In this document: piece by piece, positions 2,259 to 49,287 of the stretch | Numbering within the stretch: position 1 is the first letter of the stretch | Layout of the letters: every line of letters starts with the position of its first letter | Assembly (NCBI GenBank): GCA_965644295.1 | Contig: CBFFRP010000123.1 | Location: forward strand, 62,001 to 126,000 | Length of the DNA stretch: 64,000 bases | Direction of reading: 5' to 3' | DNA from: Paraphysomonas bandaiensis | Lineage: Eukaryota; Protista; Chrysophyceae | Made by a program: the position numbers and the translations under genes | Notes under the pieces: model-generated | Databases searched by the model: none | The model's input: the letters and a program-made list of their open reading frames with translations, nothing else | Told to the model about the DNA's origin: nothing

Positions 2259-2887
2259 TCTAGTCCAGTAAAGTGAGCATATACAGTAATAGCACGTTAA
2301 CTATAGAACTATACGTTAATATGACTATATATATAGTAAATTCAATTACAGTCAACTCAAACCCTTCAGATCACTACTGGAAAATGATTCTTTATCAAGT
2401 AGGTTGATGGATTCAATTGAAAACTCTGTAGCAAGTCATTATCATGTACTCTGTTCCTATATGCATATATACTGCTGCTGTACATATACTGTATATATAT
2501 GTGTACTCTGTATGTACAGCAGTAGAGTATGTGTAGAGTTTATGTTTGAATATGTACACATACATTATATTAAGATTTCTATACAGAAAAAAAGGAAATT
2601 TATAGCTCCTTGTGGTTTTATGTTTCCTAAAACTCCAACTTTTACAATACCGAATATTGTGGTATACCATTGGTATACTTTACGTATGCCATCAAACCAT
2701 TTGTAGATAATGCTAATATTTTCAGTTTGTCGGTTGAAGATACATCTCAGTTTTCAGCATCCACACAAATACCATATAAACAAATGAGAAGCAACTCTGC
2801 TCACTCTCTCTCTATATAAGTGGAATTAATACAATTGAACCATTGCAGTAAACTTTTCCCTGAGTATATATTGAGGTTCACTGAACA

Positions 2888-3439
<552 letters not shown>

Positions 3440-3614
3440 ATATTAAGTATACTTTGGACGTCATATTACAGGGGATAATAATCTGCAACGTTCAAATTGT
3501 AGTTGTGAAGTTAGAGATCATACTGTGTAGTCAGCGTATTACATAGTCATCTACTATATAGGGATATTTCATAGTTATTTGCATACAAGCTACCCATCCC
3601 CCCTGACTACGTAA

Positions 3615-4355
3615 CAGGGATAGGGAAAAATATATTGCAATAGTATTGATGGAGTTTATACCCCGGCCCTACAATACTATTGCAAACAATATATTGCCAT
3701 ATATTAGTATGACTAATCAGTAAGTTAATACATCCGTAGTCTTTAGTACTTGTCATTATAAGGTATACGGTTACTTGATAATCAAACCCACTACTCTTAA
3801 CTCTTTAACTAATTAAAAGTTTCCTCATACTCATCCTCTGAGCCATCATCGGTGACATAGTCATCCAATATTAATTAAAATATGCTTGCATCCGGCCACA
3901 ACCGAAGCTTTCAGAAACAACAGCATATTAAGTGTAGTAGGATGCATATGTTTGCGCAACACTGATATAATCAGTTTTGCTGCGCAGAGCGCAGAATGAA
4001 GTTCACATGTATTGGTAGTACATACTACATGACTCGTGCACCTGTACTTAGATATTTCAACTTTCTGTTTTTTAATTTTTGAGCTGATTGAAGAATTTTT
4101 TCCGCATAGCCAACTTCAGCTTCGTCATTCTCTGTATTGTTGCAATAATCACTGTCTGAACGGAGATATATGTAAATGGACTTATATTTTACATACCCTA
4201 CAGTTAAGAAGCTTTTATATATGACTATCATAATATTGATTGCAACATATTGTGAACTACTTTAACCGAAACAATATTGATGAAATATTTGACCAGTCCA
4301 CCAATCAATATATCGTACAATGTATTACAATACAATATATTGTTCCCTATCCCAG
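3615..4355 (-). mobile_element. Non-autonomous (internally deleted) hAT DNA transposon
   Basis: TIRs cagggatagggaaaaatatattg / caatatattgttccctatcccag; 8-bp TSD ctacgtaa (3607-3614) / ctacgcaa (4356-4363); minus-strand remnant TTNTCE..AAKLIISVLRKHMHPTTLNMLLFLKA resembles the hAT C-terminal dimerisation domain. Confidence 0.8.
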
Positions 4356-7300
4356 CTACGCAATTAGCTACATATGATATTCGAGGCAATCCTGGTGACC
4401 ATTAATTATAATGCAATATATATGTTTCGTTGAAAGCTCGACATTTCGTTGATTTTTTCATACACATTTGCACCATAGTTAGCATCCTTTCATTTGTAGT
4501 TTGTATCGTGATTGTATGTTAATACCTTTCTAGTTTCTAGAAAGTACAGAAAAGTAGAACAGCGTGAATGAAAGTAATTTATTAACAGTTATTGGTTAAA
4601 GTGATGTACGTAAAAGTAAATGCATAAGATAATTGCATGGCTGGAACAGTTTAGTTATTACAAATTAATAGTTGACGGTATTTTTTAAACAATTGTAAGA
4701 AGCAAGATGGAGTCAATTATATTTCCAACTATGATTTGCTGTCCCAGATTCATGGTGCTTTGAAAGTTCTCGAGATGATTTAAAGCGTTACTATTAGTAT
4801 GTTCACACTAGTAGAGACATTACTCTCACCATCAACAAAGAATGCTGACTGTATTTCACATTCTGTCATATTCGCCACCATGTAGACTACTCTATGCCCA
4901 TACCACTAATAAAGCGCAGCGCTGTATCGTATTGCACTCACTTTTTTATTGTGACCTTACATGATTGGATGAATGGAAGATCATATTCATAATATGTTTC
5001 CGTTGAGGCGAATGGATTGAAAGCTATTTTCAAATGCTTCGAACATGAGGGTGTGCATGATTGTCGTTTGGTATTTGTCAGACCAAAGGATGGGAAACTA
5101 CACACACACCAAAGAATTGTTACACGCAAAGGAGAACCTACTGTTGCGAATTCAGCTGCGGTAAGAAACTTTAACAGCAGCCAGTGGCTACTAGAATATG
5201 AGACACAACTGTTCATTAACTCGACAACCACTACAATCATAAACTACAACGGGAGACGGGAGAGTGAGATGAAATTATTATTGGTGGATGGGATGAACTT
5301 TAAGTGCAGTACAGCACTCAATCCTGGCACAAATTACAATAATAATTAAAGCAGAATTGTAATTCATACGGTAATACCTCCTCTTCGTCGAGAATTCAAA
5401 ATGTATATTCTCTAGTTCATCCGGTTTACATTAACGGTTACAGGAGAACACAGTATTAATGGAGCCAATTTCTAAATGTATACAATATTTTTTTCATAAA
5501 CCAAGATGCATACTTATTGTACTATTTATTTTCTCTTCTGTATCGTCAAATCCATTACTATCTCATTGCAGAATAAACATTGTTGTCTAATTATAATTGC
5601 AACTGTAATTTGCTGTCCCAACTTCATATTTTTTGTTTACAAACACTAGGTTGACTAGGATGGCTAGGTGTTTATTGTATTCACCTCTCACCTAGTCATC
5701 AATTTAGGAATGCAGCTACGGAATTATTCATGTTTTTGACTAGGCTTTTACACCAATATTAGTGTAACTTGGTAATTCAACCAATTTGACTAGGTTAAAT
5801 AATATTTTCCATCATAGAAGCAGGGGTGATTTTGAAAAGCATTATTTTCTAGCTTCAAGAACCACAGATAGATACCATTTAAGAGACAGTGTTACTACAC
5901 ACATAACATTGGTCCACATGACTATCTTCACCTCCTGGTGATAATTCCAGAACTACATATCGTCCCCTGCATCCTACACTTCAAACACCTTCAATTCAGG
6001 TCTTGGATGGACATGCAGAAGACAGATCATGCATGACACACAAGGAGCCTCGACACGCCACGGTACAAGTATGTAGTCCTTGGAGCATTGCTCTAACACA
6101 CAGACTGACATTTTCTCCAGCTCTCCAACATCCAATTCCGCGGACTCCCTTTGATGCCATTCGGCCACACATCTCCCCTGAAATTGCTGTAGCACAACCT
6201 CCCACAAGTCCACACACCCCCAAACCTCCCTAGGCTCTCTCACCTCTCCCTTATAGGCCCAATTCATGCTATTTCACCGAAAGACAGCTTTACAAATCGC
6301 TGTTACGTAACTTTCATACTTTATCTCTTCTCTCCACAACAGCCCCACACACACTGTGGACCCCCTGTAGCCCCCTTCCCCTTTTCCTGCACGCTGTTGT
6401 GTACATATCTCCCTGCACATGGTGATCACAGTGGAGAGCCCTCATGACACATCAGCGCCAAAGTCACTCTTATACAACCATCTTTCCCTGTTGCTGAATA
6501 TACCGGAGAACTCTCGTATCTCACGGTGTCCAACTATCCACTGTCTTTCATGTTTCTTCTGCTTTTGGCTAACACAGCACATGAACGACTTATACGCTTC
6601 CCCATACAGTAGAACAAAACCGTTTGCATAGAGTAATCTCCGGTTTTGTCACTCTTGGATAGTACTCTATTGTGTGTACTGTTGATCAGGCTTGAGTGCA
6701 CAATGATTGACAGCTCTCATGAGCCTCAAAGCGGGATGTCATGGTATGGATCATGGTGGTATACCCACTGTGCTGGATGCTATGAATATTATGGTTGATT
6801 GGTGAAGGATAAACCAGTCGAGAATCACTTCTACGCTATTGACGTAAGGCGGGCATTATACCAACTGCTGATATCAACAATGATGAACCGGAAGCTGATG
6901 AACACAGCTACGCAGACTGTGATAAACCAAAACCAACATGTCAATGATCTTGGAGTGAATGAGGTGTGTATGTGATAGATGTAAGTATTGAAAAGGTTGA
7001 ACTAACACTGTGGTGGGAGACTGATTTATATACTCTATCATTGATAATGAGGATATTTAATAAAATATCCAGCGTTTTAGTTAACTCCTTCAATAAAAAC
7101 TAGTTTTTGTTTCGAAAAAGTGGAGTTTTGATAAAATATACAGCAGAGTACACAGTACGTAGTGTAATGTATACTCGTATGTGTAATTACATGTACAGAT
7201 ACAATGTACGAAGAATGTGGTATAGCCGTACTCTACTCTCTGTATTCGTCTGTACTACTGTAGCGTTACGTTAGAATCTATTGGCTGTGTATATGAGTAT

Positions 7301-7451
7301 GGTATGCATTGTTCTTGTTCCACATCTATAGCAGTGCAGTCTATAGATGCCCATCTTCATCTTGCATTCATATATCACTTATATATATTGTAAACCACTA
7401 TAAATACTCACTTATCATTCATTTCATTGTTTCTTATATAATCATAGTAAT

Positions 7452-8282
7452 ATGCGCATATTTCCGTTACTTTATATTCAATATTTCCTTCTAACAAACG
7501 CTTACAGTAAAATTGTATATAATTTCAATGTATATTTTGAAGGCTTATCAGAGAAGCCCTTTATATTGAGTGTATGCAATAAACAGCGACCAGAAGATGC
7601 TGTCGATGATTTTTTATCACAATTTATATTTGAAGGATCCAATCGGGATACCATTCAAAAGAGTATACTACACAGTCTATGTGATAATATTAAATCAAAT
7701 TCTAATGTTGTACAATGTAATTTTGCTCCTGTAAGTAAAGTGGTTGGTGTGGTGGATTTTAGCAATATGGGGTATGTATATGGGAAATACATTGTGCGTG
7801 AAGGATACAGTTCAGATTACTGTATCGAATGTGTTTGCTCTTTGATGAACTGTTCGGATGATATGCGTCGTGTTGCGGAAGAGAAAATCAAGATGTTAAA
7901 AAGAAGTGAAGAGGTACAGAATGAGGACGAGATGGAAATCCAGTTCAGCTCGGCTTGCCCCTACAAAGTACTAGGACTCTCTGGCAGCGGAGCGTCGGAT
8001 ATCGAAATCAAGAAACAGTACAGGGAGCTTGCTAAAAAGTTCCACCCTGACAAAAATCCAGACCGAGTAGAATGGGCTACTGCAGTGTTCAAGAATATAA
8101 CTTCTGCCTATGAGGTTTTGTCTGACACTCAAAGAAGAAGAGCCTACGATAATAGCGCCCGAGGTGGGCAAACACAATCGTACTACTCATTTACGTCGAA
8201 GAGTAATGGTCAGATGAACTCATTTCAGTTTAGTTTTGGGGGTGGACGTGGGGCTAGTTTTTCGTTCAGTTTCAATTTCTAG
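7452..8282 (+). CDS. DnaJ (J-domain) protein with N-terminal signal-like sequence and G/F-rich tail
   Basis: PYKVLGL...EIKKQYRELAKKFHPDKNP...FKNITSAYEVLSD...RRAYD with intact HPD motif. Confidence 0.9.
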   Translation: MRIFPLLYIQYFLLTNAYSKIVYNFNVYFEGLSEKPFILSVCNKQRPEDAVDDFLSQFIFEGSNRDTIQKSILHSLCDNIKSNSNVVQCNFAPVSKVVGVVDFSNMGYVYGKYIVREGYSSDYCIECVCSLMNCSDDMRRVAEEKIKMLKRSEEVQNEDEMEIQFSSACPYKVLGLSGSGASDIEIKKQYRELAKKFHPDKNPDRVEWATAVFKNITSAYEVLSDTQRRRAYDNSARGGQTQSYYSFTSKSNGQMNSFQFSFGGGRGASFSFSFNF

Positions 8283-8664
8283 AACTGTGTTACACGTGTG
8301 GTTGGCCAAATGCTGATAGAATTCTTTTGTTGTGGCGATTCTATATGCGTGCTAAACTTCAACCATTGCAAATTCCATCAGAAGGAAATAAAATATTTCT
8401 TTATTATACTTTTAAAATTAAAACACCTTGAATTGTTGGTTTGAGATTGAAAACTCACTAACATGGAATATCACTCATCAACAGTATCTACTGCTCCGCT
8501 ACTAACAGTCGTAATAGACGCCAAAATGCTATTCCAAGTTTATATATTTAGGAATAATACAGACAGTAAAGGATAAAACAAACAAGTGATTTTGATTTTC
8601 ACCCTACAATATGAAGTAATACTAGTGAAACAGTCTATTCCCAGCATGCTTCCAAACGGATGCA

Positions 8665-12907: not shown

Positions 12908-13225
12908 ACTATAGACTAGTGACTTGAGAGAATATATTGGACGAAGTAATTGTCTATTATCTTTTTTCATATTCATGGTAGTAACAGTTGTAGCAGTGAT
13001 GTAACGTGTAGTAGATTGTGAGAACGATGACACTTCACGTATATTAAGTCATAATATTCACTGAACTCAATCGTGTAAGCGTTACTTTTGCTCTCATAAA
13101 TTGTGCAAATTAGTCTCTTTATTATAAAGAAAGTTGTGATAGTTAGTGCATGCATGTACTCATTCTCATACCTGAATTCAGCACGCTGACGTCATATTAC
13201 TCAATGGAATTTTGACCTAACAGTC

Positions 13226-14101
13226 TGTAATAACCAGCTATCAGGTTATTCTATTCTACAAGCTCTCTATTGTATATGCTTAAGTTTGTACATACTATCT
13301 GTGCAAACATAGATTGAATATTATTATTATTACCATAACTCACACTGAGATATATGATGTATTATGACTATGACAATTCATGCTTATTATTGATATTTAC
13401 ATAATCATTCAAAAGACAAAGAGAGACATGATTATCAATAATGAGACATAATGATGATACTGATGATGGATGATATATATATATGTTCTTATTATATATA
13501 TATATTGACTTTAAGGCTGGAGAAGTTTACTGGAGAATTCCGGGTTTGATATCCACGCTGATAGATGTGTATTGCCAGATTATCCAGTAATACAGTTATA
13601 CATTACGTATTTCCTTCAGTGCTTATTGGGGATTGATTGTACTAAGGAGTACGAATACCAGGCTTCAACTACAAAGAGAATACTGAATGTATCTTCCCTT
13701 ATACAGTTGTGATGAGTTATTATGATCAACTGTGTTAGACTGATGTGTTTGGTATTGAATATGAATGATGTTCATTCCATTGATCACGGAATCGTAGGTA
13801 GACATATTTATATTATTGATAATAAGATGCAATTTCCTTACTCTTGAAATTGCTGGTAGATAGCATTGTAGTTGTAGACATATATTTGTTCATTGTGATT
13901 TGATTATATTGTTATTATTATGGAGGAGGAGACTCTTGATAGCGCACAAGAGTCTACTAAATTCGAGTCAGTGAGAAGGACCCTCAGGCTTATGCTTGGA
14001 GGGTTAGACCCTTCCATTGCCAATGCCAGTGAGGATCAAATCCGGGATATAGGCTTGGCATTTGGGTTGTCTGAGATCGAATCAGAGACGTTGGTGTCTC
14101 A
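13226..14101 (+). repeat. 5' LTR (876 bp)
   Basis: tgtaataaccagcta...gttggtgtctca; no difference from 22627-23502 seen by eye. Confidence 0.95.
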
Positions 14102-17100
14102 ATTTTTTAAGGAAATTTCATCTCTCAATAAACAAAGTGACGACTTTAGAGAGACAGAAACTCATGAAGCAGACAGTCAAGCAACGACTGTTCCAGAACT
14201 GGTGGATCGTCTTAGTAGTCCGGAGGAGGTACCCTTGTCAGCCCGAAAACCTCTCGCATTCGGTAAGGACGCTATTCAACCATTGAGGGCTCAGGATGAT
14301 TTTTGTTCGTTTGATGCAGATGCGACAGGAGATAGTCCATTGCATATGGACCCCTTGCCATTCAAGGAACAAAGTAACAAGGAGGCTGAGGCAAAGGAGT
14401 GTCATTATACACCCTTACCTCACGCAGGGGATGAGGCACACAATGTGCTACATTCCACCTCTGGATTGCAAGGTGTATATAACACCAGCAGACCAGACCA
14501 ACTAGGTAGAGATGCGGATAGGTGTCAAATCTGTCAGCGACTCACAGATCCCAAGCGTCTCACCGCAGGAGGAATATGTTATTATTGCTCGGAAAATCAA
14601 TGTATCGATTGTAAGGACCAGGTAAATTCAATGGAAATTCAGGGTGGTCTATGTTATCGATGCCGAGTAAGAAGGGGGATACTCAGATCAAAGAGACCCA
14701 CCACAGACACATTAGAGAAGTGCATAATATTGGGCCATAGAAGATTGCGTCCTCGGCCAGACCTAAACGAGGACACATATATGGAGCATTTGTACCTGGA
14801 TCGTGGGGCTAGAGACCCTATGGACCTAAAGATTTCTCTTAACATCCTGCAACAGTACGCAGATCGACGGAGGGTACATACCACCAGATGGTCAAGACAG
14901 CGATACACCGCTCATATAGCAGAGCCACTGCAGCATTGGGAGCAGCAGATTTACATGGCTTGTACAGCTACTGAGGTCACTGATCGTTTACAGGACCACT
15001 TTTTTGAGCAAATGAAAATAGCAAGAGAGAGTTCTGCGGAAGATATTTCTCAGCTTGCCCAACTAGTCTTAAATCGAGGAAACGGCTTGCAATTACCATC
15101 AAATGTTCGCGAGTGGTTAAGTAGGCTGACAGTTCTTGACAATGTACATGAGTTAGTGGCTGAAGAGCACATTTACGAAACAGCGGAATTGTGTATGGTG
15201 CTGAACCAATACCTTGATATAAGAGACATGGCTGAAACTATGTGGGAGGAGGCCGATAGCCAACTAATGATGCGCTGCAACCTCCTCAGCAAACAACTCA
15301 GTCAGCAAAATAAAAAATTTGGATCTTGGGAAGAGAGGACCGTTGACTCTGACGATGAGTCATACCACTCCTTCGTCAGCAATGGTAGTCGGGGTTCCTT
15401 TGTCAGCAGAGGAAGTCGGTCAGCGGATACCAGATCAAGTACATCCCGAGTGTTGAGTTCTAGGGGTTCAAGATCGAATTCCCGTATTTATCCAACTGAA
15501 GATGGCAGACTGCTAGACGCACAAGCATTCGGGTGTCACCTTCAACAAATTGGAGAGCAACACTGGTCACTGCTCTGTAACCAAATGCGATCGTCTAGAG
15601 CCATGCGGTTAATGTCTAAAGCATTGCCCAAAGCTACTCCATGGAGAAGAGAAGTCAAGGAGCCTACTCTCTACATGAAGACTGATGACAAGATGCGTCT
15701 AGAGAAAGATCATTCTAATCGATACCCCATTGAAAGAGGACTCCGTTTTGCTGTCCAGAAGGCACGTCAGGCCAAGATGGGGCTGAAAGATTTGGTCATA
15801 CAGACAAAGAATGGTTGGTGTTTTAAGGGCGGCTTTAAAGAGGAACTGCAACGGTTGTCTTTGAATCGTGTGCCAGAGATATGGGATGACCAGGAGGATA
15901 GCCAATTAGCCACTGAATATGAATTTTGGATGCGTCGTTGGGTGCATTTCTGCCATTGGGCTATCCGTAATTATTGTCCCGTACAGACCAATGAACAGCG
16001 TGCCAAACAGATTGAGGACTGGGCTGCTCCTGATCTCGCTACGCCTACAGCAGTTATGCAACTATATTATGAACTAAAAGAGGTAGTTGAACATAATACG
16101 CCGGATCGCCAGACGGCACAGGTGATGGAAGAATCTATGCGCCGAGTGGTAGGAAAAGAGCCTGTTTGGGGTAAATCGTTGGTTGCAGCGTACGACAATA
16201 AGATCACAAAAATTGAAAGGGCGAAGTCGACTGAAAATTGGAGTCTATCATGGGAGGAGGTAGAATCAATCTGGCGAGAGATTCAGGAAGAATTCCAGCA
16301 GGGAACGCTGCTATACATTATACGTCCTGATGTCCAATCTAGTAAACAACCAGACACAACTAAGGGTGAGGGAGGCTTACGACGACATCACAAAGTTCAT
16401 GCCGGCATACGCGAGGAACCCAAACCATCTCTCACACCGATTGAGATTGCGAAGCTTACATGTTCACGATGTGGCCTTCGACATAGTATTAACAACGCTC
16501 AATGCCGACGCATCACGAATGGGAAATTTGACCCACTTGGATTTGTGTCTGAGACACCACGTAACATTGAAAGGAATCGAATATACAATTTTTGGTTGTC
16601 CAGATTGAATAAGTATAGCCAACCTTGGTCTCAGTTGCCTACGGCTCAGAAGGAGGAATTTCAGGCAGCATTTCGGGATTTGACTAGCCGGTGGGATGGA
16701 GGGAGTGCTTTGCATACGACATTCATTGGTGGCGAACGGAAGAAATCCAATTCCATAGCATCAAGTGTTTCTAGTACACCACAAGTACATTGGGCGGATA
16801 GTGATGATGACTCTTCTTTCTCTACACTGGATGACTCTATACCTGCTCACAGTACAGACTCACTTTCCGGTTCACGATCTACTAAGTCAAAATCAAAACC
16901 CAAACGAAAGGTTCATGCTGCACAAAAAGTTCGATACTTAGTGCACACTGTGACACCTAGGGATGAATCTCAAGATACATTATCCATGTTTCGTGTTCTA
17001 TATGATACAGTTGATGAAACTGGTAAACCAGTACAGAGAGTCGGTTGGCACCAGGTGGATCATGGCTCTATGGAGTCCTTGATCGACGAAGAGTGTGCAG

Positions 17101-17990
17101 CCCTCTTGAATCTTAAGCGAGTACGAATCCCAAAGAGAGACCGGTACATTATTCGGGGAATAGGTTCACAGGATATCGCTGTGAGTTGGAGAGCTTGTCT
17201 TACCTACACTGTTACTGCACAACGGGTCTTACCTGTGGCAGTGTTGCCGGGAGAGGCACCACTTTTGAACAATGCAAAAGAACAAGTTCAGTTGAAAGCA
17301 TGGATACCAATTATCCCGAATTGTTCCATGAATGTAATCTTTGGAGGGCATGCATTACGACGTATCAAAATGATTGACTTGTTTGATCATAAACTGCTGT
17401 TGTTCCAAACTAATGGTATTCAGTATGCAATGCCTCAATTCAACTGGAATGAGACTGTTACGCAAATGGCATCAGCTCAGGACCCTGTGGTACAGAAATG
17501 TGTTGCACGCCATCTCCGTGAAAACAAACCTCAACCTCACAAGGCTGCAGTCTGCATATCGAAACATATCCCACCGCATTCTAAGATGCGGATTCCTGTT
17601 CAAGTGGGCAAGGGTGCTCCGTTAGGTGGATGGATACAGACTCAGCCAGAGGTTGCAAGGATTAATTCAGGTGATGATGCTAATGAGCCCGTCTTACAAT
17701 TTGAAGATGCTATTTGTACGGCGAACAGACCTTATATATGGGCTTCTAATCATACCGATGATTGGATCCATCTACCGGGTAGACCGCGTTTAGTTGTACG
17801 ACTTCAACCCATATTATTGGGGATGCAGGTTCATAATCAGGAGACGGTGGAATCTGCTATGAAAGGCAGTGTCGAGACGGAGGATACCACTATCATGCCT
17901 ACTGATGACAAATTCCAGCATTCAGATATTTCTATGTTATCTGAAGAGAATCACGAAAATGTCACTAGGCTGGTGTCCTCATCGAAATGA
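13920..17990 (+). CDS. gag: Retrotransposon ORF1: large Gag-like protein plus aspartic protease (1356 aa)
   Basis: Four CxxC pairs near the N terminus; knuckle CSRCGLRHSINNAQC; protease-like QVDHGSMESLID...VIFG; starts inside the LTR. Confidence 0.8.
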   Translation: MEEETLDSAQESTKFESVRRTLRLMLGGLDPSIANASEDQIRDIGLAFGLSEIESETLVSQFFKEISSLNKQSDDFRETETHEADSQATTVPELVDRLSSPEEVPLSARKPLAFGKDAIQPLRAQDDFCSFDADATGDSPLHMDPLPFKEQSNKEAEAKECHYTPLPHAGDEAHNVLHSTSGLQGVYNTSRPDQLGRDADRCQICQRLTDPKRLTAGGICYYCSENQCIDCKDQVNSMEIQGGLCYRCRVRRGILRSKRPTTDTLEKCIILGHRRLRPRPDLNEDTYMEHLYLDRGARDPMDLKISLNILQQYADRRRVHTTRWSRQRYTAHIAEPLQHWEQQIYMACTATEVTDRLQDHFFEQMKIARESSAEDISQLAQLVLNRGNGLQLPSNVREWLSRLTVLDNVHELVAEEHIYETAELCMVLNQYLDIRDMAETMWEEADSQLMMRCNLLSKQLSQQNKKFGSWEERTVDSDDESYHSFVSNGSRGSFVSRGSRSADTRSSTSRVLSSRGSRSNSRIYPTEDGRLLDAQAFGCHLQQIGEQHWSLLCNQMRSSRAMRLMSKALPKATPWRREVKEPTLYMKTDDKMRLEKDHSNRYPIERGLRFAVQKARQAKMGLKDLVIQTKNGWCFKGGFKEELQRLSLNRVPEIWDDQEDSQLATEYEFWMRRWVHFCHWAIRNYCPVQTNEQRAKQIEDWAAPDLATPTAVMQLYYELKEVVEHNTPDRQTAQVMEESMRRVVGKEPVWGKSLVAAYDNKITKIERAKSTENWSLSWEEVESIWREIQEEFQQGTLLYIIRPDVQSSKQPDTTKGEGGLRRHHKVHAGIREEPKPSLTPIEIAKLTCSRCGLRHSINNAQCRRITNGKFDPLGFVSETPRNIERNRIYNFWLSRLNKYSQPWSQLPTAQKEEFQAAFRDLTSRWDGGSALHTTFIGGERKKSNSIASSVSSTPQVHWADSDDDSSFSTLDDSIPAHSTDSLSGSRSTKSKSKPKRKVHAAQKVRYLVHTVTPRDESQDTLSMFRVLYDTVDETGKPVQRVGWHQVDHGSMESLIDEECAALLNLKRVRIPKRDRYIIRGIGSQDIAVSWRACLTYTVTAQRVLPVAVLPGEAPLLNNAKEQVQLKAWIPIIPNCSMNVIFGGHALRRIKMIDLFDHKLLLFQTNGIQYAMPQFNWNETVTQMASAQDPVVQKCVARHLRENKPQPHKAAVCISKHIPPHSKMRIPVQVGKGAPLGGWIQTQPEVARINSGDDANEPVLQFEDAICTANRPYIWASNHTDDWIHLPGRPRLVVRLQPILLGMQVHNQETVESAMKGSVETEDTTIMPTDDKFQHSDISMLSEENHENVTRLVSSSK

Positions 17991-20900
17991 GTTGACGGCA
18001 AAGAGGTGAATCGGCCACCTCCGGAGCCACCGCCTGTTAACATAGCCGATACGACTTCGGATTGTCCACGACCGGAGTCATTCCCTGTGGAATTATGGAA
18101 TTTAGTGGATTTGTGTCAGCGAAATTCAGTTCAACCACGATTTGACAAGTACACTCCTGACCGTCTTCAAGAGTGTATTGAACTGATTTTAACTAAGCTG
18201 GATATATATAAGGATGATGAAGCAGTCTCGTTGCAAGGGGAGATTTCTATCGACGCGGATACTATAGCTTCACATCATAATGAACGTGATTATTTTTTGG
18301 CTCAAGCTTTGGCCAATATTGATGTTTTCTGTTTTCCTGATCCCGATAACCCTCCACGGATTAAGGATTATAAAGTGAGTATTGAAACTACTGATGAAGT
18401 TCCGGTTCGGGCGCGACCTCGGAAATATTCTTTATTGCAACAAGCATTTTTAGAGGCTAAAACTGGTATGATGCTTCGTCAGAAAAAGCTTCAACCCTCA
18501 AACAGTGATTGGAGCCATGGTTTAGTTCTGGTTCCTTATCATGACCGTATTCAGAAATTTTTAGATAAATGGGGAGACACGGCACATTTAGAAATCTTCA
18601 AAAAGGTTAACTGGCCTGAAGTGGCCACATTTTTTCGGATGTGTTCAGATGTCCGATCGCTCAATCAGAAAACTAAGGTAGATATTTTTCCACTTCCCAG
18701 GATTGATGACTTGCTAGATAGCATTCCTGTGGGAACTGACCGGTTTTCAGCGGGCGATATTGCTGATGCATTTTTCTGTGTGGAGCTTGACGCTGATAGT
18801 CGATTTAAAACGGCATTCCGCACTCATAACGCTCATTTACAGTATACGGTGATGTTACAAGGCTGGGTCAATGCACCTTCACACTTTAGTAGAGTCATTG
18901 CCCAGACTTTTGAAGACATGGATCGGTTTCAAGTCTCTGCATACCTGGACGATGTGCTTAACCATACTGGGGGTTTTCGTGCACATTTCCTGACACAGCA
19001 GTCCATATACGATAGACTTCGAAATCGTCATCTTACATTTAAAATTGAAAAGACTCATATTAATTATCGGGAGCTGCGGTTCCTTGGACATATTCTGTCC
19101 AGAAACGGCCGATGCCCTGATCCGAAGAAGGTTGAGGCGATTACAAATCTTGCAGACCCAGAGGACGTTACGGCTGTTCGATGTTTTTTAGGAAGTACTT
19201 CATTCTATCGTCAGTATATTCCTCAATACGCAGACGTTGCGTTGCCTCTGTATGACTTGACGAAGAAAAATGTCAACGTGAAGAAACTCTGGCGCCCAGA
19301 GATACACGGCCATGCCATGGAGAGGCTTAAAGAGGCGCTGCGGAAGGCTCCTGTGCTTCGTTACATTGATAATTCTAAACCGTTTGTCATTCACCTGGAT
19401 GCTTCCAAGACAAAGCGTGGTATCGGTGGGGTTCTCATGCAGCATGATGACGCAGGGCAGCTCCATCCGGTGGAATATTTCAGTCGTAAGTTAACTCCTG
19501 CTGAACGAAATTACTCGGCCACGGATTTGGAATGTAAGGCCCTCAGGGATGTTATTCTCCATTGGCATATTTATCTGAGTAGTGGTCGTAAATTTGAAGT
19601 CCACTCTGACCACAATTGCCTGAAATATATGGTCCATTCAGTGACTGCAACACTTAATCCACGATTGCTGGGATACCTCATGGATCTTCAATCATATCGT
19701 TTTGCTTTACATTACAAAAAAGGGGTGGAAAATGTAGTTGCTGATATGTTAAGTCGCCTTTGGCAAATAGGGGATGTACCGCCAGCTACTAGGGAGGAGC
19801 TCTCCGATCATCTCGGGCCGGTGGTTGATAATGAGGATCCAGACCTCATCCGATCATGGGGGGCTGCAAAACGACAGTTGAGTAAATTGAAACGCCAAGC
19901 GGTTGTGGAGGCGCAAACTATTAAGAAAACTCATACTTGCTCTAGCAAATTTGAGGTTCAAATCTGTAATTGTGATGCGCTGGATTTGGATTTGTTGTCT
20001 TCTTTGCCTGATGTCAAGGAAGGGGGAGTATTAGGGGAAAGTTCAGAATTAGAAAATTCTGCAGTTAGATTTAAAGTTGCTGGCTCTACATTAAAAAGAA
20101 GGAAGCAGCTTTGTATCGATGTAGAACAATATAGTTGCCAAGTCGAGAATCTACTTAAAGAATTGAATATCACGGAAGTTCAGGAAACTGGTGAGTCAAG
20201 GATGAAATTCAGCAATTCGGGACAGAATATACAACATGCAACTGCACACACGAACCGAACTAGCTTTCATCCATCTCGAACAAACTATATGGATAATCCA
20301 GATGAGTCAGAAGATATGAAGTTAATTCGAGAACGACGAATTTCTGGTTACAATCAATGTACTATTCTTCCATCGACAAAGCTAAGAGCAGGATGGGGAC
20401 TTTTTGCCACCAAACAGATCTGTCCAAATGTTGAGATTTGTGATTATGTGGGTCCGGTTGTATCTGAAGGAGTGGATCAATTAAGCTCCAATTATGGGAT
20501 GCAGATGATTGCTGGAGCACATCGTAAGATTGTTATTGATGGATGGGAACCTGGTTCAAGCTTAGGTCGATATGCGAATGATGGGATATCCAAACAATTG
20601 ATTAATGCGAAATTGATATGGAAAAAATCTAAAGGAGTTTTGATGGCTCTTAGAGAGATCTTGCCTGGGGATGAAATATTTTTTGACTATGGTAAAGAAT
20701 TTTGGAGTACTAGAAGTGATCAACTTAGTCCAGAAGATAATCAAATTCTGAATTTAGATGGATCTCGACGGAAGACTACCGTGTCTTTTAAAGATGAATT
20801 TGAGTTAATTGTGTACGATCAAAAACGGAAAGTTCAGGAGAAACTATATTCCAAAATCTTTAAGTACAGCGATGAAGAAAATTCCAGAATACAGGAACTT

Positions 20901-22571
20901 GTTGAGATGGAGGAACGAAATACTAGGAATTTCGAGAGAACTCTCCGATATCTAGAAACCGACGCTTTGGAGAAGTACTCTTATGAGAACCTAGTACAAT
21001 GCCAATCACTTGCTGACGAATTGCAATATCTGGTAGGCAGAAAGTATATTGATGACGATAATTTCCAAAAATATGAGATTGCTTCAATACATTATGATGA
21101 AATGCATAAGTTAGTGGTTGGTCATAGGAGGCCTTTGTCAGGGAAATTGGATAGATATGATACTCACCCATTCGCCGTATGTGGAAAATCTGGATTATGG
21201 GAGTTATCAGATCAATATTTATTAGATCATCCGGAAGAAGATCCGGAGATTAAGTGGCCTTCGAGTAGAGAGAGTATGTTTCAGATCCAAGAAAATGATA
21301 CTCAACTTGGATTGATTATATCACAGTTATCAAATTTTGAAACTGGCCATGAGTTAGAAGTGGATGGTCATGTTTACAAGTTACATGAGAATGCAGATGA
21401 ACCATCGCACAAGACACTATTGAGAAAACATGTTCAGAAAAACAAGGGATCAATAGATTGGCAAATTATGGTCCCTCAGGTGTTACGTTTTCAACTAATG
21501 AAGTATTTCCATGAAGGATATACGCATCCAGGAACACAACGAATGCTTGAAACTTTGAAATTGAGATATTTTTGGCCGTCAATACGCAAGGATGTACAGA
21601 AACATGTGGAGGAATGTATACCTTGTAAATTACGTAAGACCTATCAAACGCGACCAAAGATTCCAATAATGAAATACCCTGATGCAAAATTTCCTTTGTC
21701 ACGAATACATATTGATTTAACAGGAAGATTGGTGAAAACCAAAAGTGGTTTCAGTTATATTCTAGTGGTAAAGGATTTCCTTACTAAATTTGTTTGGCTT
21801 ATGCCTCTTAAGAACAAGACGCCTTTGGAAGTGGCTAATGCTTTGATTACTCATGTGTTTTGTCCATTTGGGTTACCAGAATTACTGGTGAGTGATAAAG
21901 GCACAGAGTTTGTCAATAAACTGACCAAAGCAATATCCAAGTTATTCAAGTATAGAAGGATTAACACTACTCCTTATACTCCAAGGAGCCAGGGTTTAGT
22001 TGAGAATCACAACAAGACGTTGAAGGATCAGTTGTACCATTTTGTAGGTGTATTACAGGATGACTGGGATACATTTTTGCCTACAGTACAATTGATGTAT
22101 AATACTACAGTGTCCTCGAGCACAAGTTTTACTCCATATTATATGATGTTCGGTAGAGAATGCCGTTTACCATCTATAGAGTTTACATTGTCCTCGAAAC
22201 TTTCCGAGCTTCGATTACAACCTGGAACTATTGAAGCTGAATGGATAGATAAATTGTTGATTTCTTTGGAACAAGCTTGGAATTATGCAACGAAGAAGGC
22301 TCAAAAGAATCATCTTCGACATAATATAGTATCTAGGCGACCTCGAGAGTTCAAAGAATATAATGCTGGTGACTTATTCTTCAGAATTCGACGTCCAATT
22401 AATGTGTTTAAATCGGCTGATGATGAGGAATTGTATAAAATCAATGCCAAATTACAAGCTAGATTTGAAGGACCTTATAAAGTTATTCGGCGACTAAGTC
22501 CAATACTTTATGATGCTGAAATTGAAGGAAAAGAGGTTCGAATAAATGCTACTAATATGAAGCCATTTTAG
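17991..22571 (+). CDS. pol: Retrotransposon Pol: RT, RNase H, SET domain, integrase; in frame with ORF1 after a single TGA
   Basis: RT FPLPRIDDLL / QGWVNAPSHF / YLDD; RNase H DAS / YSATDLE / SDH / ADMLSR; integrase HEGYTHPG..CIPC, IDLTG, SDKGTEF, GLVENHN, FEGPY. Confidence 0.95.
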   Translation, partial: VDGKEVNRPPPEPPPVNIADTTSDCPRPESFPVELWNLVDLCQRNSVQPRFDKYTPDRLQECIELILTKLDIYKDDEAVSLQGEISIDADTIASHHNERDYFLAQALANIDVFCFPDPDNPPRIKDYKVSIETTDEVPVRARPRKYSLLQQAFLEAKTGMMLRQKKLQPSNSDWSHGLVLVPYHDRIQKFLDKWGDTAHLEIFKKVNWPEVATFFRMCSDVRSLNQKTKVDIFPLPRIDDLLDSIPVGTDRFSAGDIADAFFCVELDADSRFKTAFRTHNAHLQYTVMLQGWVNAPSHFSRVIAQTFEDMDRFQVSAYLDDVLNHTGGFRAHFLTQQSIYDRLRNRHLTFKIEKTHINYRELRFLGHILSRNGRCPDPKKVEAITNLADPEDVTAVRCFLGSTSFYRQYIPQYADVALPLYDLTKKNVNVKKLWRPEIHGHAMERLKEALRKAPVLRYIDNSKPFVIHLDASKTKRGIGGVLMQHDDAGQLHPVEYFSRKLTPAERNYSATDLECKALRDVILHWHIYLSSGRKFEVHSDHNCLKYMVHSVTATLNPRLLGYLMDLQSYRFALHYKKGVENVVADMLSRLWQIGDVPPATREELSDHLGPVVDNEDPDLIRSWGAAKRQLSKLKRQAVVEAQTIKKTHTCSSKFEVQICNCDALDLDLLSSLPDVKEGGVLGESSELENSAVRFKVAGSTLKRRKQLCIDVEQYSCQVENLLKELNITEVQETGESRMKFSNSGQNIQHATAHTNRTSFHPSRTNYMDNPDESEDMKLIRERRISGYNQCTILPSTKLRAGWGLFATKQICPNVEICDYVGPVVSEGVDQLSSNYGMQMIAGAHRKIVIDGWEPGSSLGRYANDGISKQLINAKLIWKKSKGVLMALREILPGDEIFFDYGKEFWSTRSDQLSPEDNQILNLDGSRRKTTVSFKDEFELIVYDQKRKVQEKLYSKIFKYSDEENSRIQELVEMEERNTRNFERTLRYLETDALEKYSYENLVQCQSLADELQYLVGRKYIDDDNFQKYEIASIHYDEMHKLVVGHRRPLSGKLDRYDTHPFAVCGKSGLWELSDQYLLDHPEEDPEIKWPSSRESMFQIQENDTQLGLIISQLSNFETGHELEVDGHVYKLHENADEPSHKTLLRKHVQKNKGSIDWQIMVPQVLRFQLMKYFHEGYTHPGTQRMLETLKLRYFWPSIRKDVQKHVEECIPCKLRKTYQTRPKIPIMKYPDAKFPLSRIHIDLTGRLVKTKSGFSYILVVKDFLTKFVWLMPLKNKTPLEVANALITHVFCPFGLPELLVSDKGTEFVNKLTKAISKLFKYRRINTTPYTPRSQGLVENHNKTLKDQLYHFVGVLQDDWDTFLPTVQLMYNTTVSSSTSFTPYYMMFGRECRLPSIEFTLSSKLSELRLQPGTIEAEWIDKLLISLEQAWNYATKKAQKNHLRHNIVSRRPREFKEYNAGDLFFRIRRPINVFKSADDEELYKINAKLQARFEGPYKVIRRLSPILYDAEIEGKEVRINATNMKPF
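20358..20705 (+). other. SET lysine-methyltransferase domain embedded in Pol
   Basis: AGWGLFATKQI...ICDYVG...IDG...LGRYAND...NAK...ALREILPGDEIFFDYGKEFW matches the SET motifs GxG, RFxNH and ELxFDY. Confidence 0.9.
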
Positions 22572-22615
22572 GTTCGCAGTGAACTTCGTTCCGCATACTG
22601 GCGTATGCGACTGCT

Positions 22616-22626
22616 GGAGGGGGTAG
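22616..22626 (+). promoter_or_regulatory. Polypurine tract of the LTR element
   Basis: ggagggggtag immediately 5' of the 3' LTR. Confidence 0.85.
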
Positions 22627-23502
22627 TGTAATAACCAGCTATCAGGTTATTCTATTCTACAAGCTCTCTATTGTATATGCTTAAGTTTGTACATACTATC
22701 TGTGCAAACATAGATTGAATATTATTATTATTACCATAACTCACACTGAGATATATGATGTATTATGACTATGACAATTCATGCTTATTATTGATATTTA
22801 CATAATCATTCAAAAGACAAAGAGAGACATGATTATCAATAATGAGACATAATGATGATACTGATGATGGATGATATATATATATGTTCTTATTATATAT
22901 ATATATTGACTTTAAGGCTGGAGAAGTTTACTGGAGAATTCCGGGTTTGATATCCACGCTGATAGATGTGTATTGCCAGATTATCCAGTAATACAGTTAT
23001 ACATTACGTATTTCCTTCAGTGCTTATTGGGGATTGATTGTACTAAGGAGTACGAATACCAGGCTTCAACTACAAAGAGAATACTGAATGTATCTTCCCT
23101 TATACAGTTGTGATGAGTTATTATGATCAACTGTGTTAGACTGATGTGTTTGGTATTGAATATGAATGATGTTCATTCCATTGATCACGGAATCGTAGGT
23201 AGACATATTTATATTATTGATAATAAGATGCAATTTCCTTACTCTTGAAATTGCTGGTAGATAGCATTGTAGTTGTAGACATATATTTGTTCATTGTGAT
23301 TTGATTATATTGTTATTATTATGGAGGAGGAGACTCTTGATAGCGCACAAGAGTCTACTAAATTCGAGTCAGTGAGAAGGACCCTCAGGCTTATGCTTGG
23401 AGGGTTAGACCCTTCCATTGCCAATGCCAGTGAGGATCAAATCCGGGATATAGGCTTGGCATTTGGGTTGTCTGAGATCGAATCAGAGACGTTGGTGTCT
23501 CA
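22627..23502 (+). repeat. 3' LTR (876 bp)
   Basis: Direct copy of 13226-14101, followed by TSD agtc. Confidence 0.95.
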
Positions 23503-24006
23503 AGTCAGACTGTATCGTCTTAGATGTTCTAAGTATGTGATTAATACATTAATGATACTGAGTATGGTAGGTTACGATTACTCAATTAGTATCCACTATC
23601 CACTATGCATCTTGGCTAATACAATGACTCTATGAGTACATGAGTACTAAATTATACATTATTTTAGTATATTGTGTATTGGATTTTATTGCAGTTGTAT
23701 TTGAGTTGTGAGTAGTAGAGTTATCGTATTATCTGAGTGCTACAGTTGAAGTTTACAAATCACCAACTCCTGGTTACTGTTGTCAAAGTGCAACTGTGCT
23801 ACCAGTATACCAGAGTGCACCTAGTCATTATGCCAGACAATCTCATATTAAGATCAGTTCACACGAAAAAGCATAACTGCGATATATAAGTCGATACATA
23901 TCGTCTAATTGGCTCAGTTAGATATCGCAAAAAAATACTAGCCCCCTTACTACTAATCACACATTTACAAACATTTATGTACAATACGCTACACAGTGAC
24001 CATAAA

Positions 24007-33277: not shown

Positions 33278-36200
33278 TCAATTCAATCGTTCTCGTCCAC
33301 TCCTGTAGTTGTGGACCGTTGCCTCAAGGTCTTCAATCACCAAAGGCTTAGCAAGAATGGCATTAGCCCCCGCTGAAAGAAACATCTCCACATCAGAGGG
33401 CATCATATTACCGGTAACCCCGACAATCAGTCCGGCATATCCGGCTTCACGCATCATGCGTGTGGCAGTAGGACCATCAATCGTTGGTAAGACAAAATCC
33501 ATAAGAATGACATCAAAGCCTATTTTGAGTTTGTTGAAGTATGGTGGTTGTTCCTTCAACTCACTCCCATTGACGATATCAGAGACATTTACAGAAATAT
33601 CATTGAGTCTAGCCACTGCAGCAATCGCTTCACTGCCGTCTTCGACTACATCACACTTCGCTCCTTTGGCAGAGAGGATTTTAGATACAATCTTTCGAAT
33701 CATAAGAGCGTCATCCACAATTAGAACCTTGAGATCACGTAGAATGTCAGGAGGAGTATCGGAATTCTGGGAATTAACTCGACTTGTATAAATCCTATCT
33801 GGAGGAGAGGTCTCCTTTTCCGGAATTCCCTCCACGACGTTGCACGGGGATGGGGGTTCATTGACCACTTCACAAGGTTGTTGTACATCCATTCCTACAG
33901 CATCACAGTCCTCTTCACTTGATTTAATAACATACACAGGAAGTCTCACGAAAAATGTACAGCCCTTTCCAATACCCTCTGAATGAACGCCAACCTTTCC
34001 TTTGTGTAAACTGACAATTCCATGGGAAACTACCGATACAAGTTACTATAAATAACAATGCAAAAATATATACTTACTCCACAGCCCTAAACCTGACCCT
34101 TCTCCAGACTGTAGTTCGTTGGGTGAAAATTGTACAATCTCTTTGAATACCTTTTCTTGGTTCTCCTCCGATATACCAACTCCGGTGTCAATGAACTGGA
34201 TACATAGCATGCCATTTCGTTGGTACTCGTGCTTGTTGTCTGTTATGTACATCTCTGGTCCATCGTCATCATCCTCCAGCGGTTCATCAACTATCGAATC
34301 ATCTGCATATATCTCCACCGTCACATTCCCACCAGCAGGAGTAAACTTTAGCGCGTTAGAAGTCATATTACGAATGACCTGACAGCTATATAAACAAGAA
34401 TAGAGAAATACATCATTTGAAAACCTGACTCATTTTGCTAGGATCCACGTGAATATAAAGTGAGTCAGGGTCATCTACTTTGCATTTAACATTGAAATTC
34501 ACGCTACGATGCTTCGCCTGCATCCAAAAACAGTTTAGACATATGCGTGTAGCCTATATGCATACGCACCTTCAGCACAAAGGGGCGCAAAGTGTTCGTA
34601 ACGAATGATACGGCTGGCATGACATCTCTAAAGAGCTTCATTATTCCTGTAGATTCATGCGATCAGATACTATTATAACATACGTACTATCACATATACC
34701 GGATTCAAGCTTTTCGTACGAGAGCAGATCATTAAGTATCGTGACGGCGATACCAATTGACTCCTGACACTCCTTGATGCTGTTGATACACTCCTCACCA
34801 GCCCCTAACTTGGCCACTTCCTCCTCAACGACCATAAGTCCAAGTTTAGAAACCGTTAAAGGTGTGCGAATCTCGTGACTGCATTCGGTGGAACATAAGA
34901 TATCATATATAAACCAATATAAAACTTACCTGACGTAACGAACAAATGCACGCTTAGTGTGTAGAGATGTCTCCGCACTCTCTGCGGCCTGCTGCATAAG
35001 CATCATACTGTTCTTTCGCTCGTCCTCCAATTGTTGACTCATAGTTGCCAATCGATAACCCTGCTCAGTCTCGGAGTACAAATGCTCTTGCACCAAAACC
35101 ATCTGCAGTCGACAATCATTTGTCGAAAGGTCGTTCACTTTAACGCCTTGTCTTGTCATGTCAGACAGGTTTGAGACGTTTGGAGTGCACAGCAGTGTTG
35201 CTATCGAAAAATCTTGGTCGAAAAGAATCTGCCCAATTAGTCTAAAGCTCTCAGTAGCCCCAGGTCTTGGTTCCAGAAGTGAAACAAGTGACAGCTGCTC
35301 CCCATGCATACGCCCTGCCCAAGTTTCCCAGTCATTCCATCCCAGACCTTTGTCCTGAGGTTCGAAAAGCTCACCCATACGTCGACCAACTACTTTATTC
35401 CCCATAAAATCACCCACTTTCTCCCCAGCTTGCAGCACCAACAAATTCCTGTCAAATACAATATGATAGGGAAAGGCCTCAGCAAGTTGTGTGCCACTGA
35501 GTCCCCACCGCATACCAGAATTGCGCGCCTGCTCACTCTCCGATCGAGGACGTTTTGATAGACGACAGGAAGGGGGAGAATATGTTGATAAAGCACTTGT
35601 ATCACGTGTAGTTCGTTTATTAACATTGCAGTTACTACAAAGCTGTGAAAGGGGTGTCGCAGGAAGAAGGGCTGCTGCTAGAGCATCTTGACTAAGAGTA
35701 TACGCGCCGGATTTCATATATCCGCTATCAAGGCCCTCCCCGCCACGTTGTGAGAAAGGACACTGAGAAATTGATTCCAGAATATCAACGGGGTCCTTAT
35801 GATCGTCCATGGCTTCTGACATTTCTGGGCTGCTGCCATTTAAGCTAGGAGAGCAATTTGACACAGAATTACTGTCTACGGTTCCTATCTCTTGTATGCG
35901 CCATACAGTGAACTCTGACCCGTCTACATCCTGTGTGGCCTCCCGAACCATATTCACCTTAAGTTTAAAGTAACTTCTTGCGACTTCTTTCACTATACCC
36001 ACAACTGTAGGCGCCAATCGGGAACCACGATGACTCTTATATTGAAGAATAAGATCTCCTGTATCATTATGACAAGTACACCTATACATATATCAATAAA
36101 ATAAATATATATTCTAATTATAATCCTTACATACCAGAATTGAGGGGGGATCATCTTAGGTAATGCCCCTGAAAGATGTGAATGAAGATGATTCACATTA

Positions 36201-48378: not shown

Positions 48379-49287
48379 ATGGCATCATTTGCAGCTGTTG
48401 ATAAAGATGTTGTCAATGCTTCTAATGAATCAGGTGAACAGAATGAGAAAGTAGCGAATATAGATGTATCGACTGTAGCATATATATATGATCTTGCCAC
48501 TCAACCAACAGAGGTAGATACAGGATTTAGAAAATGTATTATTGAACGCCATGAAAATTTTCATATTCGTGGTGTTAGACCTCATGCGACATTTTCTATA
48601 CGATTCGGCACACCACAGAGTGATGATGAAAACACATCCCGCTTATGGGCACAACGACATATGTTAGCACAAAATGCTTTTTATGTCATATCTGCATCTC
48701 CCTATGACCTTGATAAGAAGAGAAATGAACGATCTGAGCACTTTTTAGGTAAATTGAAACGGATTCATGGGTCAGTGCTGTATGAAGGTGTATTATATCG
48801 GAATGAGGAGCGCAAGCCTTTAGTTGGAATTGTCTATGATCATGATCGAAACAATCATAACGATCGTAAAATGGAAGTTGGTATTCCGACTTCTAGTGTC
48901 TCTTCGGTCGAGGAATTTAGTCAAAATTTCAAAATGATTAGGCATGAGGGAGCTCAGAATAGCGCACAGTTTCCAGCTGTTGAGTACTACAACCAGATAA
49001 CGGATGACCCTGAGCTGATGAAGTCTCCTGAAATTCTCGAGAAGTTTCAAGTCGATGGTGAAGCTACAGCGCTTGTTGTATCCGCTAAGAATTTTCAGCT
49101 CGTCAAGTCGGAGCCATATCGACTACAGTATCGTAATACGAATTCAGAAGATGAGACTCCGAAAGTGGTTTTACAGTTGGGCAAACTGGATAGTAACTTG
49201 TTCACGTGCTACTATACGGCACCATTTACCCTTTTACAAGCCTTTATGATTGCTCTATCGAGGTTTGAAACGCAGCAGAAATACTAG
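48379..49287 (+). CDS. Tubby-domain protein
   Basis: FLGKL; VSAKNFQLV; VVLQLGKLDSNLFTCYYTAPFTLLQAFMIALSRFE, the Tub-family C terminus. Confidence 0.85.
   Translation: MASFAAVDKDVVNASNESGEQNEKVANIDVSTVAYIYDLATQPTEVDTGFRKCIIERHENFHIRGVRPHATFSIRFGTPQSDDENTSRLWAQRHMLAQNAFYVISASPYDLDKKRNERSEHFLGKLKRIHGSVLYEGVLYRNEERKPLVGIVYDHDRNNHNDRKMEVGIPTSSVSSVEEFSQNFKMIRHEGAQNSAQFPAVEYYNQITDDPELMKSPEILEKFQVDGEATALVVSAKNFQLVKSEPYRLQYRNTNSEDETPKVVLQLGKLDSNLFTCYYTAPFTLLQAFMIALSRFETQQKY

Follow-up and report, generated by a model that had tools for sequence, protein, structure and literature searches.

We examined a 64,000-nt stretch of Paraphysomonas bandaiensis contig CBFFRP010000123.1 (assembly GCA_965644295.1, positions 62,001–126,000, forward strand), hereafter called the window, and found that positions 13226–23502 are occupied by an intact Ty3/Gypsy-type long terminal repeat (LTR) retrotransposon whose Pol polyprotein carries a SET domain, a protein-lysine methyltransferase fold, ahead of the integrase (IN). 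A Pfam scan combined with an alignment of relatives gave the Pol order reverse transcriptase (RT), RNase H (RH), SET, a small SH3-like barrel (designated “module 2”), and IN. The element is mobile, with recent independent insertions in the genome, and its SET fold has been inherited vertically and held under purifying selection. We favor, with moderate confidence, the interpretation that the SET is an active, integrase-linked enzyme that acts on chromatin at the integration site.

The SET domain and the adjoining barrel

An earlier note, made from the letters of the window alone, had recognized a SET domain at positions 20358–20705, in frame within an uninterrupted Pol. This piece translated to 116 residues without a stop, in which the motifs GWGLFA, DYVG, IDG, RYAND, and EIFFDYGKEFW were present, and it matched the Pfam SET model (PF00856) with an E-value of 7.5e-9 (36.4 bits; cut-off, 22.4). 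The match was also recovered from the whole Pol (amino acids [aa] 796–896, 31 bits against the same cut-off of 22.4), in a 1521-aa open reading frame (ORF), after RH and before IN, and the SETs of the relatives scored 44–51 bits against PF00856. The domain therefore lies where it had been placed, with slightly wider limits: a hidden Markov model (HMM) built from the relatives gave an envelope of 20346–20735 (Pol aa 781–910). When the PDB was searched by sequence, the sole structures matched were histone lysine methyltransferases (KMTs), with EZH2 and EHMT2 at an E-value of ~2e-5 and weaker matches to MLL, SET2, and SETMAR. Furthermore, an AlphaFold2 (AF2) model of Pol aa 766–1105, computed with 46 aligned relatives, had a predicted local distance difference test score (pLDDT) of >90 over most of the SET core. 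Foldseek matched the SET model to 352 PDB chains at E-values up to 0.001, and the top matches were G9a/GLP, MLL1/3/4, SET8, and PRDM9 (E ~3e-7). The template-modeling (TM) score by target was 0.6–0.65 for minimal SETs, and the lowest root-mean-square deviation was obtained for PRDM9 (2.7 Å, TM by target 0.62). Taken with the motifs and the substitution pattern described below, the Pfam, PDB sequence, and AF2/Foldseek matches argue that Pol contains a bona fide SET fold of PR/SET-like type.

Two further comparisons bear on the type of SET. The PRDM2_PR model (PF21549; cut-off, 27 bits) scored 31.5 bits for L022 and 30.4 bits for L024, two loci of a second family in this genome, and 26.2 bits for L023, and it did not match the window’s copy. 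The nearest clusters in the ESM Atlas were SET or PR/SET proteins of 143–154 aa from Nucleocytoviricota and Bacteroidota; these are language-model neighbors and serve as a lead only, in line with the earlier comparison of this domain, with its N-H-to-N-D change, to minimal viral- or bacterial-type SETs.

Motif conservation was counted in the alignment of a 35-member clade of element-borne SETs. The second Gly of GxG was kept in 33/33 members, the Tyr of YxG in 32/35, the SET-I Tyr in 34/35, the Asn of N-A-K in 34/35, the Glu ahead of the catalytic motif in 35/35, and the catalytic Tyr (Pol aa 895 of the window, within FFDYG) in 33/34. The Asn of the N-H motif was present in 27/35, with Gln in the remaining 8, and Asp (Pol aa 859 of the window) replaced the usual His in 35/35. 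A canonical host SET in the same genome reads N-H-S-C. The N-D form is a subfamily trait and not a sign of decay: it also occurs in 19/19 sister rows of the SET tree, in four SETs of the genome borne by long interspersed nuclear elements (LINEs), and in 72/97 of the remaining (outgroup) SETs.

Module 2 (20976–21278, Pol aa 991–1091), which had escaped the earlier note, comprises ~100 residues and begins ~80 residues downstream of SET. It was kept in every full-length relative, and its alignment holds 29 clusters. Folded alone with AF2 (pLDDT 89), it formed a small beta-barrel packed with helices. No Pfam family matched it, and Foldseek against the PDB returned no match at E-values up to 0.001; among the weak rows were a Tudor domain (Tbtudor, probability 0.6) and the chromo-barrels of MRG2/MRG15. 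VIA-align against 48,161 chains gave Z values of 5.5 (CAP-Gly), 4.4 (Tudor), and 4.2 (MRG15), each of them under the noise guide of 7–8, and the ESM Atlas, queried by features and by shape, gave no consistent match. These models suggest that module 2 is a lineage-specific SH3-like barrel that matches no fold family significantly, and a role as a histone-mark reader is possible. It represents a new conserved domain, always paired with this SET.

Copies, relatives, and selection

The genome searched (62.6 Mb, 669 contigs) contained eight full-length internal regions with 97–100% identity, two further copies truncated at the end of a contig, and many LTRs that were solo or partial. The LTRs of the window’s element, which had been judged identical by eye, form a direct repeat of 877 bp with 100% identity (13226–14102 and 22627–23503). 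A perfect 4-bp duplication, different in every case, was determined by script for six full-length copies and two solo LTRs, and a third solo LTR (C385) had the duplication ATTA, read by eye from the flank. Because each of these insertions has its own 4-bp duplication, they are independent integrase-mediated insertions and not assembly duplicates, and the element is young and transposition-competent. The insertion flanks were mildly AT-rich (GC 29–40%, compared with 39% for the window). Outside this assembly, sequencing runs belonging to at least 16 studies, seawater and other marine metagenomes among them, also contained near-complete copies. Two polyA metatranscriptome runs yielded short contigs with zero differences from the window at 21122–21632 and 22569–22600, which is compatible with transcription of the element.

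The SET is not confined to this family. A second family in the genome (on C476, C654, C661, and C339) had the same RT-RH-SET-module 2-IN order, with a SET identity of 35–37%, and a word-indexed protein search recovered the same order in P0002 (a Joint Genome Institute [JGI] metagenome) and P0003 (a Logan run). When 1.84 billion cluster representatives were searched exhaustively with a profile, 36 matched at E-values up to 1e-30, and 10 of these spanned essentially the whole SET-plus-barrel profile. When six long representatives were scanned with Pfam, P0009, P0011, and P0012 showed RT, RNase H, SET, and integrase, and P0004, P0007, and P0008 showed integrase domains, accompanied by SET in two of the three. 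The metagenomic relatives P0002–P0012 and P0021 share the module order, and in total ~35 metagenomic clusters have the SET-carrying layout.

A SET tree with 155 rows placed all barrel-bearing element SETs in one 35-row clade with a Shimodaira–Hasegawa-like approximate likelihood ratio test (SH-aLRT) support of 99; the rest of this clade consisted mostly of short fragments, and no barrel was seen in these. The simplest reading of the tree is that SET and barrel were captured once and then descended vertically in one Gypsy clade. The phylogeny called for by the earlier note thus gave a single Gypsy clade, with no host, viral, or bacterial donor nameable from it. The tree neighbors of the clade are metagenomic proteins with no other Pfam domain; the tree resolves the Gypsy clade but not the branching among these neighbors.

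Selection was assessed from the ratio of nonsynonymous to synonymous substitution rates (dN/dS). Between L022 and L024 of the second family, dN/dS was 0.04 in SET (dN 0.007, dS 0.199), 0.02 in the module 2 barrel, and 0.01 in the integrase core, compared with 0.39 in the linker between SET and module 2 (linker 2). Between the window and its 97% copy (L009), it was 0.20 in SET (three nonsynonymous and four synonymous changes) and 0.17 over the whole 1175-codon stretch. Comparisons among near-identical copies, with 1–3 changes in SET, are underpowered, and the inference of selection rests on the second family. These substitution patterns indicate that SET and module 2 are under purifying selection as strong as that on the integrase. 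The possibilities raised at the outset, that the SET might be peculiar to a single copy or evolve neutrally, are thus answered by its presence in 8–10 copies, in the second family, and in ~35 metagenomic clusters, and by the contrast in dN/dS between SET and its neighboring linker.

One relative, on C297 (L029, G000:C297:795000–804999), is degraded, with 66–75% DNA identity and frameshifts. It lacks Pol aa 664–1051, which include SET and most of module 2, and aa 1244–1363; the end of module 2 remains. We rejected it as a SET-less sister lineage, and as evidence that the SET is optional, in favor of a frameshifted deletion derivative that retains the end of module 2.

Meanwhile, the same genome holds other SET-carrying elements. 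Pfam SET matched at 126 places, dozens of which were full-model matches of 40–42 bits within very long open frames. One of these elements, L031 (G000:C143:25000–34999), is of LINE type: its ORF (42–8426, minus strand, 2795 aa) encodes SET (aa 874–978), followed by an APE-type endonuclease (1039–1276) and then RT (1733–2025). The four LINE-borne SETs that were placed in the tree have the N-D motif and lie near the Gypsy SET clade, apart from canonical host SETs; the node joining LINE-borne and Gypsy SETs had an SH-aLRT of 89, and the tree does not resolve the branching below this node. Elements of LTR type and of LINE type that carry a SET therefore coexist in a single protist genome.

The database proteins P0015, P0038, P0077, and P0044, recovered by the profile search, include proteins with many tandem SETs (a 4152-aa protein with 5, a 799-aa protein with 8, and a 2237-aa protein with 11 stretches) and a further one of 2700 aa in which two SETs accompany PRMT5 and a DOT1-like stretch.

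Possible roles of SET and barrel

In the interpretation that we favor, Pol would be produced by reading through one in-frame TGA, and its SET would be catalytically active as a PR/SET-type protein-lysine methyltransferase. After processing, SET and barrel would stay joined to the N terminus of the integrase; this is expected because the gap between the barrel and the integrase zinc domain is ~65 residues, whereas the linker between RNase H and SET is long (~215 residues) and variable. The SET would then enter the nucleus with the integration complex and, close to the target site or directly at it, methylate a lysine in the tail of a nucleosomal histone or in some other chromatin protein. Such methylation would either shape the new copy’s chromatin or make it easier for the intasome to engage nucleosomes. 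More tentatively, this widespread marine-protist Gypsy lineage may bring its own histone-lysine methyltransferase and barrel, joined to the integrase, and mark the nucleosomes of its landing site to steer or escape silencing. The effect could be one of anti-silencing, self-taming, or targeting.

Several observations weigh against this interpretation. Asp takes the place of the canonical His in the N-H-S motif, even if this is a trait of the whole subgroup, and we know of no assayed enzyme with an N-D motif; PRDM9 is an active enzyme that also lacks the motif His. The domain lacks a post-SET zinc cluster. When SET was folded together with S-adenosylmethionine (SAM) and residues 1–45 of host H3, the outcome was no verdict (score 0.01, mark 0.34), which speaks neither for binding nor against it. 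Module 2 was matched to no reader family by Foldseek, VIA-align, or the Atlas, and no sequence-level target preference was evident in the flanks of the copies examined. Furthermore, the RNA evidence consists of contigs, which may reflect DNA carry-over.

Other roles can be weighed on the same evidence. SET and barrel might act chiefly by tethering nucleosomes or histone tails and thereby steering integration, in the manner of the chromodomain of chromoviruses, with methyl transfer dispensable or absent. The pair adjoins the integrase of an element that has no chromodomain, the barrel is of a small beta type used by many histone-tail readers (its matches being weak), and the N-H-to-N-D change could lower catalysis. 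However, the best-kept positions are those of the SAM pocket and the catalytic Tyr, which a pure binding module would not need; the N-D form is common to a wider subgroup that includes stand-alone minimal SETs; and the flanks show no clear target preference. We therefore regard a tether as unlikely. All sequence-matched structures and the top fold matches are histone KMTs, and a barrel that may belong to a reader superfamily is co-inherited with SET, which argues against an active SET directed at a non-histone substrate, such as a protein of the element itself (Gag, RT, or integrase) or a host factor involved in restriction or trafficking. Many SET enzymes do methylate non-histone proteins, and this one is made within a polyprotein, in cis with possible substrates, so that such an activity, while doubtful, deserves about as much weight as the tether.

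That the SET is a neutral passenger, either a captured fragment of a host gene or an artifact of assembly or annotation, is very improbable. Transduced host fragments do occur in retroelements, but here two families and ~35 database clusters that form one clade share a single module order, SET is far more constrained than the linker beside it (dN/dS 0.04 against 0.39), copies of identical sequence sit on separate contigs, where their target duplications differ, and the sole SET-less relative, on C297, is the frameshifted derivative that keeps the end of module 2.

LINE-type elements of the same genome carry a related SET beside their endonuclease. If an integrase-linked SET does act on chromatin in the Gypsy lineage, protein-lysine methylation would be a recurrent retrotransposon strategy beside the known captures of DNA methyltransferases (DNMTs). 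The system offers near-identical copies with known insertion sites, a natural SET-deleted derivative (C297), and relatives in many marine samples, and for these reasons it is directly testable whether a transposon can determine the histone marks at the site where it inserts or pick its targets by engaging histone tails.

Known systems and element anatomy

Both chromatin readers (chromodomain, PHD, and methyl-CpG-binding domain [MBD]) and DNMTs are known to have been taken up by retrotransposons. The Gypsy lineage with a SET in Pol appears to be a further form of this capture of chromatin machinery. In agreement with the earlier note, a full-text search of a literature library, which did not cover Repbase, Dfam, or GyDB, found no description of a SET inside Gypsy Pol (RT-RH-SET-IN), nor of any element lineage whose Pol carries a writer of histone-methyltransferase type. 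The chromoviruses (MAGGY and Tf1) are likewise Gypsy-type elements with a chromatin-directed accessory domain joined to the integrase, probably acting at integration; however, their chromodomain follows the integrase, whereas a writer-type SET fold and a barrel precede it here. The window’s element had been described as having no chromodomain after the integrase, and none was found there by Pfam at E-values up to 0.1; Pol stops after the GPY/SH3-like stretch, a weak Tf2-1-type match.

The same note had held that accessory chromatin domains of such elements are usually readers, which stands in part. A reader is exemplified by Copia elements with an MBD (PMC6673714), in which, as here, a host-type chromatin domain has been captured by an LTR retrotransposon family; there it is a reader of DNA methylation in Copia, and here a SET fold in Gypsy. 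Writers have also been published: DNMTs are carried by dinoflagellate and charophyte retrotransposons (PMC5890265), and DAM-LTRs and “EpiLTRs” are retrotransposons with DNA methyltransferases (bioRxiv 10.64898/2026.05.21.726589). These elements resemble ours in maintaining a captured epigenetic writer under selection, but they methylate DNA, whereas the fold found here is that of a protein-lysine methyltransferase. The terms “SET” and “histone methyltransferase” are both absent from the text of the latter preprint, and “SET domain” does not occur in a review of retrotransposon accessory domains (PMC6338049).

Fusions of SET with transposable element (TE) domains are listed by Grau-Bove et al. 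(bioRxiv 10.1101/2021.11.30.470311), who reported that TE fusions in 172 genomes mostly involve PHD and Chromo, followed by SNF2_N, SET methyltransferases, and others. In the part of that source considered here, the SET rows listed comprise SETMAR and single chimeric models in Hydra, Breviolum, Selaginella, and a scorpion; the model types include a Hydra SMYD-LINE and Copia and piggyBac chimeras, and a Symbiodinium row is a PRDM-like “SET RVT_1 DnaJ” model of LINE type. None of the rows listed has SET beside RT_RNaseH, Integrase_H2C2, or rve. These cases share with ours the presence of SET and TE domains in one gene model; as far as listed, they are single gene models, in contrast to the element lineage described here. 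SETMAR, the primate fusion of SET with a mariner transposase, similarly joins SET to a TE protein in one polypeptide, but it is a domesticated host gene derived from a DNA transposon, whereas our SET is part of a mobile retroelement. Finally, PR/SET and minimal SETs (PRDM9, SET8/KMT5A, and giant-virus or bacterial SETs) share the fold and core motifs with the domain in Pol, which differs in its location in a retroelement polyprotein, its invariant Asp in place of His, and its lack of zinc fingers and a post-SET region.

The remaining anatomy, all on the plus strand, is that of a Ty3/Gypsy element: paired LTRs with TG..CA ends and a short duplication, and an integrase downstream of RT. The target-site duplication AGTC is present at both ends (13222–13225 and 23503–23506). 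The 5′ LTR (13226–14101) begins with TG and ends with CA, the exact repeat extending 1 base more, to 14102, and the 3′ LTR (22627–23502) is its identical repeat. A purine-rich tract, GGAGGGGGTAG (22616–22626), adjoins the 3′ LTR and, as read from the sequence, is a probable polypurine tract. A classical primer-binding site, of TGG type, was not recognized after the 5′ LTR. In Pol (18006–22571, 1521 aa counted from the first GTG, in a frame open from 17991), RT (RVT_1, aa 210–364) occupies 18633–19097 (Pfam E 1.4e-18), and RNase H (RT_RNaseH/RT_RNaseH_2, aa 434–564) occupies 19305–19697 (E 1e-27 to 4e-28). Linker 1 (19698–20345) varies in length between families and contains most of the differences between copies; linker 2 (20736–20975, pLDDT 41–45) is the least constrained stretch. 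The integrase consists of the zinc-binding domain (Integrase_H2C2, aa 1156–1212, 21471–21641, E 8.5e-17), the catalytic core (rve, aa 1230–1326, 21693–21983, E 8.4e-9), and the C-terminal SH3-like stretch of Tf2-1 type (aa 1477–1503, 22434–22514), which scored below the Pfam cut-off.

ORF1 (13920–17990, 1356 aa) is Gag-like, with a CX2C..H..C knuckle, and lies in the same frame as Pol, with a single in-frame TGA (17988–17990), another feature overlooked in the earlier note, between them. The metagenomic relatives L032, L033, L034, and L035 have the same junction, with one in-frame stop, TGA or TAG. Pol is likely made through programmed readthrough of the TGA, because the single stop recurs at the junction in these four relatives and is unchanged in contigs of a variant lineage. 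The junction stop is followed by G in 4/5 elements; in the relatives it is located at 3266 (L032), 554 (L033), 4568 (L034), and 1001 (L035).

No Pfam family matched ORF1, and TelK_stirrup, a weak match under the cut-off, was disregarded. ORF1 is homologous to that of L032 (E 1e-45). A retropepsin-like stretch at ORF1 aa 1017–1197 (window ~16950–17510) aligned to aa 84–258 of P0012 (E 1e-11), and the presumed catalytic triplet of the protease is D-H-G in the window, D-P-G in L032, and D-T-G in P0012. This stretch lies upstream of the stop in the window’s element and downstream of it in P0012. ORF1 also has no APE-type endonuclease, unlike the relatives P0009 and P0012, in which (L035, 1172–8725, and L034, 4613–12262, respectively) the ORF that encodes RT-RH-SET-IN also has an Exo_endo_phos (APE-type) domain upstream of RT. 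It is unusual for an LTR-type Pol to combine an APE domain with an integrase.

The start of ORF1 lies inside the 5′ LTR, 183 nt of which (13920–14102) it covers, and therefore the 3′ LTR carries the same start; a 104-aa ORF there (23321–23635) extends into the flanking DNA. The element is inserted in a gene-bearing region, since ordinary cellular genes of the host, namely a DnaJ gene (7452–8282), an HNOB/HNOBA (haem-NO-binding associated) gene (34926–36089, minus strand), and a Tub-family gene (48379–49287) lie nearby.

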